Shown in pieces: positions 50,502 to 52,445 of a stretch of DNA of 62,971 nucleotides (position 1 is its first letter; each line of letters begins with the position of its first letter). Where the stretch lies: assembly GCA_038087875.1 (NCBI GenBank), contig JAXLNO010001957.1:1030-64000 (forward strand), read 5' to 3'. The notes under the pieces were generated by a model, which was not told the origin of the DNA, made no database searches, and was given only the letters and a program-made list of their open reading frames with translations. This stretch comes from Malacoraja senta. Taxonomy: Eukaryota. The translations under genes were made by a program, and so were the position numbers.

Positions 50502-52445
50502 ATCCACCCTTTTCTTTTTTGCTACGCAACCTTTGATTTATACTATCTTCCTTTTCTAATGCTAGCAGCAGATTATTCGCCTCCCTATCCCCCTCTCGTT
50601 GGTTATACTGTGTTCTGAAGGCCATCATGGTGGCGGCCCTGTTCTTTGTCAGGGCTGTTTCTATCAATCGCTGAGCCAATCCCCGTACGCAGGGAATGAT
50701 ACAACATCCGAACAAACACAGTAACCCCACCATGACTACCACTGATGTTAGAGCTGAGGTAAAGATGTCCTTCCATTTCCCAAACCAGGATTCTAGAAAC
50801 CCAGTCCAGGAGTTGTCTACTCCAGAGTTCTCAGCCAATTCGATAGTCAGAGAGGTGAGACCTGCTAGGGCTCTTGACACTGACCCATCCGGAGCAGTGT
50901 TGTTGGGGATGAATGTGCAACATTGTTCGCCAAACATTACACACACCCCTCCCTTCTCAGCCAGTAGCATGTCCAAGGCCATGCGATTTTGCCAGGCCAT
51001 TTGGCTGGTAGCTGTCAGTTGTTCCGCTAATCCTTCAACTGCATCTCGAGTGTAATTTATAAAGCGTTGTTGATTGTAGTATAGGTAGTTGATCCAGTCC
51101 ACATTTTTATTAATTGTGGACCACCAGAAGAGCATGGACTCAAAGCCCGCAGCTATCTGGTTTCTGGCTTTGAATTCATCGGGTACCCCTCTTGTCACCC
51201 CTATCGCATCTATATATATATGTGTGTGTCGAATGATCCTTTCACCCCTCTCTTTTGTTGTTGGCTTCCTTCATTGAGTTCTACAGCATGTTCTACTGCT
51301 ATGGTGAAGGGCATCATCAGTTGTGTGAGGGTACTGGTTCCCGTCCATGACCCCGGTAACCGGGGCCACAGGGTATTTTCCCCGCACCACCACCAGACAT
51401 CGGCTCTACTGACTATCTGTTTTTTTAGCCAGGAGCTATTGAACAGTGGTCCCTGTTCCTCAGCCGTTATGTTATACGTCTGATTGCAGTTGAGCACCTT
51501 CCCCATATCCTGTCCCTCTGGGTTATTTCTTGTATAGCACTCAAACCCCTCCTCCCCAAGAGGACTGGTAAATGGAGGAGGTCGAGGGTCTTCCCTTCGG
51601 CCCTTCGTATTGTTGTTGCTGGTCGGAAATAGGTAATGATAACTCTGGCATATCACATTCTTTGGTAAGAGGGGATTCGTGAATAGCTGTAGTATACATG
51701 ACATAGCCCTAGGTGTTCTATTCCAATTCAGGGGAAATGGTACTGGGACCAGCTGAGGCCTAGCTCCGGCGCAGGTGTAACAATTGGTTTGTTGCATACT
51801 TCTGGCTGTGTACATCATCCAGGCAAGCCAGGTGTTGGCTCCTTTTCCCCCTGTTGGTATTCCCTTCTCATATAACTGCCTTAATCCTGTTTCTCCTTCT
51901 ACTATCATTATCTTCAGATCCTTAGACTCATTCTCCCTGGTGACTTTGCTGACTACCGGTGGTGCTGGTGTTGCCCCGGGATCCCTATTCTGACTGTCAT
52001 CTATCTTGAACACCTCTCCCCTATCCTCATATCTTACCATCTCCCCATCCCGCTTCACTTCTATCTCAAACTTCAGACATGTGTCCTTCCCTGTTTTATC
52101 TGCACATATCCAATACCTACCACTTTCCTGCATTTGAACACTCTGTATGCTCACATATATACGTCCTGGCAATTTCTCGTTCGGGTTTTGATATATTTTC
52201 CACCTATCAGTTTGATAGGTGGTTCGATGCCACCCATATTTTGATGAAGTAAACACCGCGTGCCAATTTCTACAGGGATGGGTGCATACATACATTCTAT
52301 AGCCACACCACCATTTTCCTTTACATACATTAAATGGGATGGTGGTGGGCCTTCTATTCTGTGGTATTGTGATTTTTATGCATGTTATATTACTCACGAG
52401 TTGGGTAACCACCCAACACACGACCCACCAACACAAAATCTTCAT
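50497..52445 (-). pseudogene. Gamma-type retroviral env (~645 aa if repaired); one 2-nt slip near the start of TM
   Basis: Signal peptide MKILCWWVVCWVV; SU CYTC (CxxC); basic cleavage site QQKR; TM GVPDEFKARNQIAAGFES; ISD-like QNRMALDMLLAEKGGVC; CX6CC (CVMFGEQCC); membrane anchor. A stop arises at GACACACACATATATATATAG, and deleting one TA restores ..HIYIDAIGV. Confidence 0.93.

Follow-up and report, generated by a model that had tools for sequence, protein, structure and literature searches.

An endogenous retrovirus of skates encodes an envelope protein with a predicted immunoglobulin V domain, related to fish CD300/NILT/pIgR-type immune receptors, in the receptor-binding position

A broken endogenous retrovirus (ERV) in a skate-type genome encodes a gamma-type envelope protein (Env) in which the N-terminal position, occupied by the receptor-binding domain (RBD) in classical gammaretroviruses, holds a single segment homologous to V-set Ig domains of teleost CMRF35-like/pIgR-like (NILT-type, Cx3C) receptors. 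The element lies in a stretch of 62,971 nucleotides (the window; contig JAXLNO010001957.1 of Malacoraja senta), and its features are listed in the table below. The order in Env is signal peptide (inferred), V-like domain, short Pro-rich linker, SU core with CXXC and TM with CX6CC. No description of such an arrangement was found for any retrovirus in the searchable literature, including papers on skate ERVs and on retroviral envelopes in connection with CD300 or V-set domains.

Features of the ERV fragment (positions are those of the window)
Feature	Position	Strand	Env residues	Basis
Main ERV fragment: 3' end of pol, env and one LTR; no gag, pro, RT or 5' LTR	49945..52750	-		Aligns end to end (92.7% over 2830 nt) with a proviral copy in the little-skate genome (locus L004); the window has no second LTR or gag/pol
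Truncated 3' end of pol: integrase C-terminal domain	52390..52750	-		Pfam MLVIN_C, E 4.8e-11
env gene (SU + TM), broken once by a frameshift, no in-frame stop inside the aligned parts	50497..52445	-		Translation; tblastn of two longer-reading copies gives two HSPs in two frames with no internal stops
Signal peptide (cleavage site inferred)	52380..52445	-	1-22	Inferred from the hydrophobic N-terminus in the translation
V-set Ig-like domain (predicted fold)	52053..52379	-	23-131	AF2 model and Foldseek matches (see text)
Part of the domain with sequence-level homology to host V domains (strands C to G)	52053..52298	-	50-131	Host-only HMM, hhalign and BLASTP (see text)
Cx3C motif in the C-C' region	52272..52286	-	C54...C58	Translation; motif type shared with the teleost hits
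E-F turn and F-strand motif (acidic-S-G-x-Y-W-I-C)	52104..52127	-		HMM alignment; canonical Cys column holds Ile113, with the Cys one residue later
Short Pro-rich linker between the V-like domain and the SU core	51954..51983	-	155-164	Translation
CXXC motif (C-Y-T-C) of the SU C-domain (gamma-type SU-TM disulfide partner)	51771..51782	-	222-225	Translation; role from knowledge of gamma-type Env (PMC9967133)
CX6CC motif of TM	50917..50943	-		Translation; Pfam TLV_coat on TM, E 2.2e-11; PDB sequence hits are syncytin-2, syncytin-1 and MLV p15E
Membrane anchor of TM	50689..50742	-		Hydrophobic stretch in the translation
LTR following env	49945..50501	-		Matches the LTR of L004, whose two 577-bp LTRs are 99.5% identical to each other
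Second, partial ERV piece abutting the first: 3' half of TM plus the first ~290 bp of an LTR	52752..53456	-		Direct repeat of 706 bp, 98% identical to 50215-50914; 52752-53041 match the L004 LTR

The sequence-only reading had proposed a CD300/pIgR-type V domain in this Env from a C41-x12-C54-x3-C58 pattern, an F-strand motif ending in Y-W-I-C, a G-x-D motif, a linker and a C-Y-T-C motif, and all of these were confirmed in the translation. It had not mentioned that the gene is on the minus strand, that env is broken once in this copy, that the copy lacks gag and most of pol, or that two extra cysteines (C47 and C123) accompany those at positions 41, 54, 58 and 114. Its call of the fold and family and its placing of the domain in a gamma-type Env are supported, with three refinements. 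The closest relatives are teleost Cx3C-type (NILT-like) V domains rather than mammalian CD300/pIgR; Cx3C is the class described for NILT D1 domains, while human CD300, TREM and PIGR carry Cx6-9C. Pfam V-set does not hit, and only strands C to G are supported by sequence. Capture from a host gene, the role as attachment module and the lipid or Ig ligands suggested in that reading remain inference.

To address whether the likeness to V domains exceeds chance, Env residues 19-160 were compared with 1.84 billion representative sequences in an exhaustive phmmer search. Only the ERV's own cluster, two teleost V-set proteins (E 6.2e-7 and 4.5e-4) and a few bacterial proteins were found. Of the bacterial hits, three are Reg_prop beta-propeller proteins matched by short W/Y/N-rich repeats and another is a large bacterial surface protein, and they were rejected as compositional or repeat artefacts. 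BLASTP gave 34% identity over 82 aa to a trout protein. An HMM built from 15 teleost V domains, with no Env rows, scored 37.2 bits (E 1.3e-13 for one target) and aligned over its positions 30-105 of 106, whereas the best of 2000 shuffles scored 11.3 bits, and no hit was obtained in the rest of SU. Comparison by hhalign gave 94.4% probability (E 8.5e-8) over 79 columns. The host relatives carry the names CMRF35-like molecule 1/2/5/9 and polymeric immunoglobulin receptor-like. In the PDB, a profile dominated by the teleost host rows hit pIgR D1, CD300f/CLM-1, CD300a, NKp44 and FcmuR.

Not all searches detected the domain. Pfam V-set (PF07686) gave no hit for the domain or the SU frame even at E 10, although the teleost relatives do pass; a sub-threshold Herpes_gI match was dismissed. 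Direct PDB sequence searches with the domain, the SU frame and the Env-only alignment returned only noise. A word-index search with the whole SU found only near-identical copies, a scan of IMG/VR found nothing, and a metagenome scan found one host-like V exon only. No elasmobranch donor gene was found, and all detectable relatives are teleost.

An AF2 model (pLDDT 71.8, pTM 0.67) has nine strands in the V-set order A B C C' C'' D E F G. In a Foldseek search at least 485 PDB matches reached E<=1e-3, and all but one of the 50 listed are Ig V-type domains. The best matches are CD300lf (5ffl/6h6l) and CD300f (2nms, TM 0.74), at TM 0.69-0.74, together with TREM2, NKp44 (1hkf) and pIgR (1xed/4nof), although identity to the model is only 15-18%. 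The RBD of EnvP(b)1 (6w5y) ranks only 38th, at TM 0.55 (E 7.9e-5). The alignment used for modelling contains host V-set rows, so that the fold result is not independent of the homology call; an earlier model from a 10-row alignment was unusable (pLDDT 37.7). The A and B strands (residues 23-49) are supported by the model alone and show no sequence similarity to host A/B strands. MAFFT placed the N-terminal 27 residues differently in each alignment, hmmalign left them unaligned, and an ungapped offset scan was no better than shuffles. As the B-strand Cys register is thus unresolved and the canonical F-strand Cys column holds Ile, the hallmark inter-sheet disulfide may be absent.

The domain belongs to a genuine gamma-type ERV env. 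It is in one open reading frame with the signal peptide and SU core. In two other copies on independent contigs (L002 and L006), env lies directly downstream of a long pol ORF carrying RVT_1, RNase_H, rve and MLVIN_C, and pol matches MLV/XMRV RT at E 1e-146. In L004 the unit is bounded by an LTR pair. The copy in the window, in contrast, is a dead, rearranged fragment. Between the window copy and six others, pN/pS for the V domain is 0.30-0.37. Among those six, 4 variable codons are synonymous-only and 2 change the amino acid (binomial p about 0.01-0.02; p 0.0009 for the whole SU frame). Although the counts are small, these substitutions suggest purifying selection.

These results are best explained, with fair confidence, by an env gene of a gamma-type (class I, MLV-like pol) ERV of skates in which a V-set domain, homologous to the CxnC-bearing innate immune receptor V domains of fishes, stands where an unrelated RBD sits in classical gammaretroviruses. 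The most likely history, inferred rather than demonstrated, is that a retroviral ancestor acquired a host V-domain coding segment by recombination with a host transcript. The most likely mechanism, in the absence of binding, expression or entry data, is that the domain acted as the attachment module at the top of the Env trimer, and that ligand binding would then trigger the usual gamma-type CXXC/CX6CC disulfide isomerisation and fusion. Gamma-type SU is known to be modular (RBD, Pro-rich region, C-domain), with unrelated RBD types in different lineages (bioRxiv 10.1101/2021.11.05.467493).

An unlikely alternative is that there was no recent capture, and that the domain is a little-diverged representative of the ancestral gammaretroviral RBD, the likeness to host receptors reflecting very old common ancestry of all such RBDs. 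The EnvP(b)1 RBD core is described as sharing similarity with a V-type Ig fold (PMC7683403), and this structure appears among the Foldseek matches. However, no sequence match was found to the N-terminal (RBD) part of Pfam TLV_coat or to any solved retroviral RBD, and the structural match is weaker than that to CD300 domains. The domain keeps family-specific host motifs (Cx3C, acidic-S-G-x-Y, G-x-D) and has only about 110 residues, without the helical decorations of type C RBDs. No other Env cluster carrying it was found among the 1.84 billion representatives. Equally doubtful is a host-derived domain with a role other than attachment, for example as a decoy or modulator of host CD300/NILT-type immune signalling, with receptor binding residing in the SU C-domain. 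Some gamma-type SUs do lack a separate RBD and bind through the C-domain equivalent (bioRxiv 10.1101/2021.11.05.467493), and large DNA viruses carry captured Ig domains that probably have immune-modulating roles. The position ahead of a Pro-rich linker, on the other hand, copies the RBD-Pro-rich region-C-domain layout.

Still less likely is a fusion that arose in the host genome, by exon shuffling or domestication joining a host V exon to a resident env remnant, with the copies being segmental duplicates. The window locus is itself rearranged and partly duplicated, and NCBI annotates one copy as an Env-like host gene model. Nevertheless, the V-env frame follows complete pol reading frames in L002 and L006, lies between nearly identical LTRs in L004, and has different flanks in the window copy and in L004, which are properties of proviral insertions. 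Chance or convergent motif similarity, or an assembly chimera, is refuted by the HMM score, 26 bits above the best shuffle, by the hhalign result, and by the occurrence of the same open frame in at least seven independent sequences from five sequencing runs, one genome assembly and the window.

The domain was also compared with known systems. With the teleost NILT/CMRF35-like and pIgR-like V domains it shares homology over strands C-G at 25-34% identity, the Cx3C pair, the G-R-aromatic D-strand start, the acidic-S-G-x-Y turn, the G-x-D FG motif and a length of about 110 aa. Those host domains sit on type I membrane receptors with ITIM/ITAM-type tails, whereas this one is fused to a retroviral SU and is a homologous domain, not a member of the receptor gene family. 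The type C RBD (MLV, FeLV, EnvP(b)1) occupies the same position in Env and has a beta-sandwich core with V-type Ig resemblance, but it shows no sequence similarity and is about twice as large, with helical variable regions. Capture of OGFr by anamniote retroviruses with gamma-type Env is a precedent for retroviruses of lower vertebrates carrying intronless host sequence (bioRxiv 10.1101/2021.11.23.469661). There the host gene is a separate insert found by CD-Search, while here a host-type domain is built into Env and escapes domain-database detection. Ig-domain glycoproteins of large DNA viruses (poxvirus haemagglutinin, elephant herpesvirus vIgFam, aviadenovirus ORFs), the best matches in the viral structure library BFVD, show that viruses do acquire V-like Ig domains. 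They belong to different virus classes, are not part of a class I fusion protein and have lower TM-scores (0.5-0.69).

It is possible, though only tentatively proposed, that a retroviral lineage replaced or created its receptor-binding module by taking a V domain from a fish innate immune receptor (NILT/CD300-like), perhaps in a ray-finned-fish host before reaching skates, since all detectable relatives are teleost. This would be a natural example of a class I fusion protein retargeted by a host Ig domain, and would also hint that the V-like cores of classical gammaretroviral RBDs arose in the same way.

How retroviral SU proteins obtain their RBDs is an open question. Gamma-type Envs carry at least two unrelated RBD types, and some carry none, while the one well-studied RBD core only vaguely resembles a V-type Ig fold. 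Here the N-terminal module still shows sequence-level kinship with a specific host receptor family, and the origin of an RBD can therefore be studied directly, in terms of donor gene, date, exon bounds and selection on CDR-like loops. A survey of gamma-type Envs in anamniotes found a captured host gene by domain search but reported no Ig domain. The present case shows that standard domain databases miss such captures, so similar cases may be hidden in other anamniote ERVs. The family looks young in the skate genome, as judged from the LTRs of L004, which gives many copies for descriptive evolutionary work.

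The env reading frame runs on the minus strand from 52445. To examine the claim made in the sequence-only reading, that Env carries an apparent CD300/pIgR-type Ig V domain in the receptor-binding position, the frame was translated, and all the strings on which that claim was based were present. Cysteines lie at 41, 47, 54, 58, 114 and 123 of the domain. The Pro-rich stretch is aa 155-164 and C-Y-T-C is aa 222-225. TM has a CX6CC motif and a membrane anchor, and it matches Pfam TLV_coat (E 2.2e-11) and also the solved syncytin-2, syncytin-1 and MLV TM chains.

An integrase C-terminal domain (MLVIN_C, E 4.8e-11) ends just upstream of env, but there is no gag, protease, RT or second full LTR anywhere in the window. 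The ERV fragment aligns end to end (92.7% identity) with L004, a proviral copy in the little-skate assembly (GCA_028641065.1). A second, partial piece abuts the integrase tail. This piece and positions 50215-50914 form a direct repeat which makes the fragment look like 1.28 tandem units, the partial env-3'/LTR piece being joined mid-LTR to an integrase tail. A LINE RT fragment lies directly beside the ERV pieces. The env of this copy is broken once, by a frameshift, with no internal stops in the aligned parts. The window copy is therefore a dead, rearranged fragment. The coordinates of these and other elements are listed in the table.

Coordinates of the ERV fragment and of other elements observed in the window and in related sequences
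Sequence	Coordinates	Strand	Feature
Window	52053-52379	-	Env residues 23-131, V-like domain
Window	52077-52325		Env aa 41-123, the stretch bearing cysteines C47 and C123
Window	49945-52750		ERV fragment aligned with L004
Window	49945-50501		LTR, the last about 557 bp of the fragment
Window	52752-53456		Second, partial piece: 3' half of TM plus the first about 290 bp of an LTR; direct repeat of 706 bp, 98% identical to 50215-50914
Window	50215-50914		Counterpart of the 706-bp direct repeat
Window	53501-53718		109-bp unit duplicated in tandem (99% identity), with a third, 72%-identical copy at 55166-55274
Window	54029-55125	-	LINE-type RT fragment (RVT_1 plus the ALKBH8_N-like tail common in such elements)
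Window	24280-30227	+	AT-rich (about 30% GC) LINE with long ORFs for an AP endonuclease (26267-27601) and a reverse transcriptase (27583-29223)
Window	39160-41598	-	DIRS/Ngaro-like retroelement: RT ORF (40618-41598) followed by a tyrosine recombinase ORF (39160-40155; Phage_integrase plus SAM-like N domain)
Window	55800-62971		Satellite-rich block: 30-bp, 8-bp and 27-bp tandem arrays in a higher-order repeat of about 3.5 kb (copies 87-99% identical), interrupted by several N runs
L004 (Leucoraja erinacea CM054015.1)	5066-11771		Copy of the same ERV
L005 (metagenome contig ERZ506812 NODE-4080)	606-821		Host-type V exon 28% identical to the Env domain, on a 1-kb contig; probably fish DNA in a metagenome

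The same signal-peptide, V-like and SU-core frame occurs on contigs from five sequencing runs and in the skate genome. In L002 and L006, two of the other copies, it starts where a long pol ORF ends. That pol carries RVT_1, RNase_H, rve and MLVIN_C, and it matches MLV/XMRV RT-RNase H at E about 1e-146. In L004 the unit lies between 577-bp LTRs that are 99.5% identical, so the family looks young. Only about 5.5 kb lies between these LTRs. L004 is a young insertion with internal loss. One cluster member is annotated by NCBI as 'endogenous retrovirus group FC1 Env polyprotein-like [Leucoraja erinacea]'. The frame is thus a real ERV env and not a chimera.

Similarity of the domain to Ig V domains was next examined. 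Pfam V-set does not hit even at E 10, and direct PDB sequence searches find nothing. However, an exhaustive phmmer search of aa 19-160 against 1.84 billion representative proteins returned the ERV's own cluster and two teleost V-set proteins, a five-domain Xyrichtys protein (E 6.2e-7) and a trout protein (E 4.5e-4), along with bacterial repeat proteins, which were rejected. BLASTP gives 34% identity over 82 residues to the trout protein and 23-28% identity to each of the five Xyrichtys domains. Relatives of the trout protein are named CMRF35-like molecule 1/2/5/9 and polymeric immunoglobulin receptor-like. When an Env-only alignment was compared with a salmonid alignment by hhalign, a probability of 94.4% and E 8.5e-8 over 79 columns were obtained. 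An HMM built from 15 teleost domains, without any Env row, scores the Env domain at 37.2 bits, whereas the best of 2000 shuffles scores 11.3 bits and the rest of SU scores nothing. A profile of an alignment dominated by the teleost host rows hits pIgR D1, CD300f/CLM-1, CD300a, NKp44 and FcmuR in the PDB.

The shared features are the Cx3C pair, a G/D-R-aromatic D-strand start, the acidic-S-G-x-Y turn, the G-x-D motif and the alternating G strand. According to a survey of NILT genes, Cx3C is typical of teleost NILT D1 domains, while human CD300, TREM, NKp44 and PIGR carry Cx6-9C (bioRxiv 10.1101/2022.04.21.489081). The nearest family is therefore the teleost NILT/CD300-like group rather than mammalian CD300/pIgR proper.

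A structure was predicted with AlphaFold. A first run with 10 rows failed (pLDDT 37.7), but a second with 22 rows (Env aa 22-138) gave pLDDT 71.8 and pTM 0.67. All five models scored 66-72, and the model has nine strands in the order A B C C' C'' D E F G. The modelling alignment contains host V-set rows, so the model corroborates the homology call but is not independent of it. Foldseek against the PDB puts CD300lf (6h6l, 5ffl, 1zox), CD300f (2nms, TM 0.74), TREM2, NKp44, pIgR and CD300a first. The only retroviral RBD listed, EnvP(b)1 (6w5y), is rank 38 with TM 0.55. Against predicted viral structures, the matches are captured Ig proteins of pox-, herpes- and adenoviruses, and no named retroviral Env appears.

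Only strands C-G (aa 50-131) are supported by sequence. Residues 23-49 are left unaligned by HMMER, are placed differently by MAFFT in each run, and score no better than shuffles at any ungapped offset. The canonical F-strand Cys column holds Ile113, with Cys114 one residue later. Two cysteines, C47 and C123, have no counterpart in the teleost relatives and are kept in all copies seen. Together with the displaced C114 they suggest a rewired disulfide pattern. From the strand string of the model alone, C114 and C123 would be inferred to face each other across the F-G hairpin, and the three disulfides could then all be local (41-47, 54-58, 114-123).

Gamma-type SU is modular, comprising an RBD, a Pro-rich region and then a C-domain with CXXC, and different lineages carry unrelated RBDs or none. 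The V-like domain occupies the RBD position. A host-derived V domain acting as the attachment module of a gamma-type Env is therefore the favoured explanation, and as a whole it is probable. Of its parts, membership in a true ERV env is nearly certain, the homology is highly likely and the host-to-virus direction is likely, whereas the attachment role is about as likely as not. The lipid or Ig ligands proposed in the sequence-only reading rest on family analogy. Two alternatives appear unlikely, an ancestral V-like RBD rather than a capture, and a host-derived domain with a non-attachment, immune-modulating role. A fusion made in the host genome is somewhat less likely still. Chance or artefact can be all but dismissed.

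ERVs with gamma-type Env are known in cartilaginous fishes, and host-gene capture (OGFr) is known in amphibian relatives. In the literature that could be searched, no report of a V-set or CD300-like domain in a retroviral Env was found. All detectable host relatives are teleost, yet the ERV lives in a skate. This could be attributed to a database gap, to rapid divergence, or to acquisition in a ray-finned-fish host.

To address constraint on the domain, pairwise Nei-Gojobori counts were made between the window copy and six other copies. These give pN/pS 0.30-0.37 for the V domain and 0.39-0.49 for the rest of the SU frame. Among the six other copies the V domain has 4 synonymous-only variable codons and 2 that change the amino acid, and the rest of SU has 8 and 14. 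The V-like segment of L004 has no amino-acid difference from three of the contig copies (L001-L003). Binomial tests give p about 0.01-0.02 for the V domain and 0.0009 for the SU frame. Although the counts are small, they suggest that the domain was kept under purifying selection while the family diversified.
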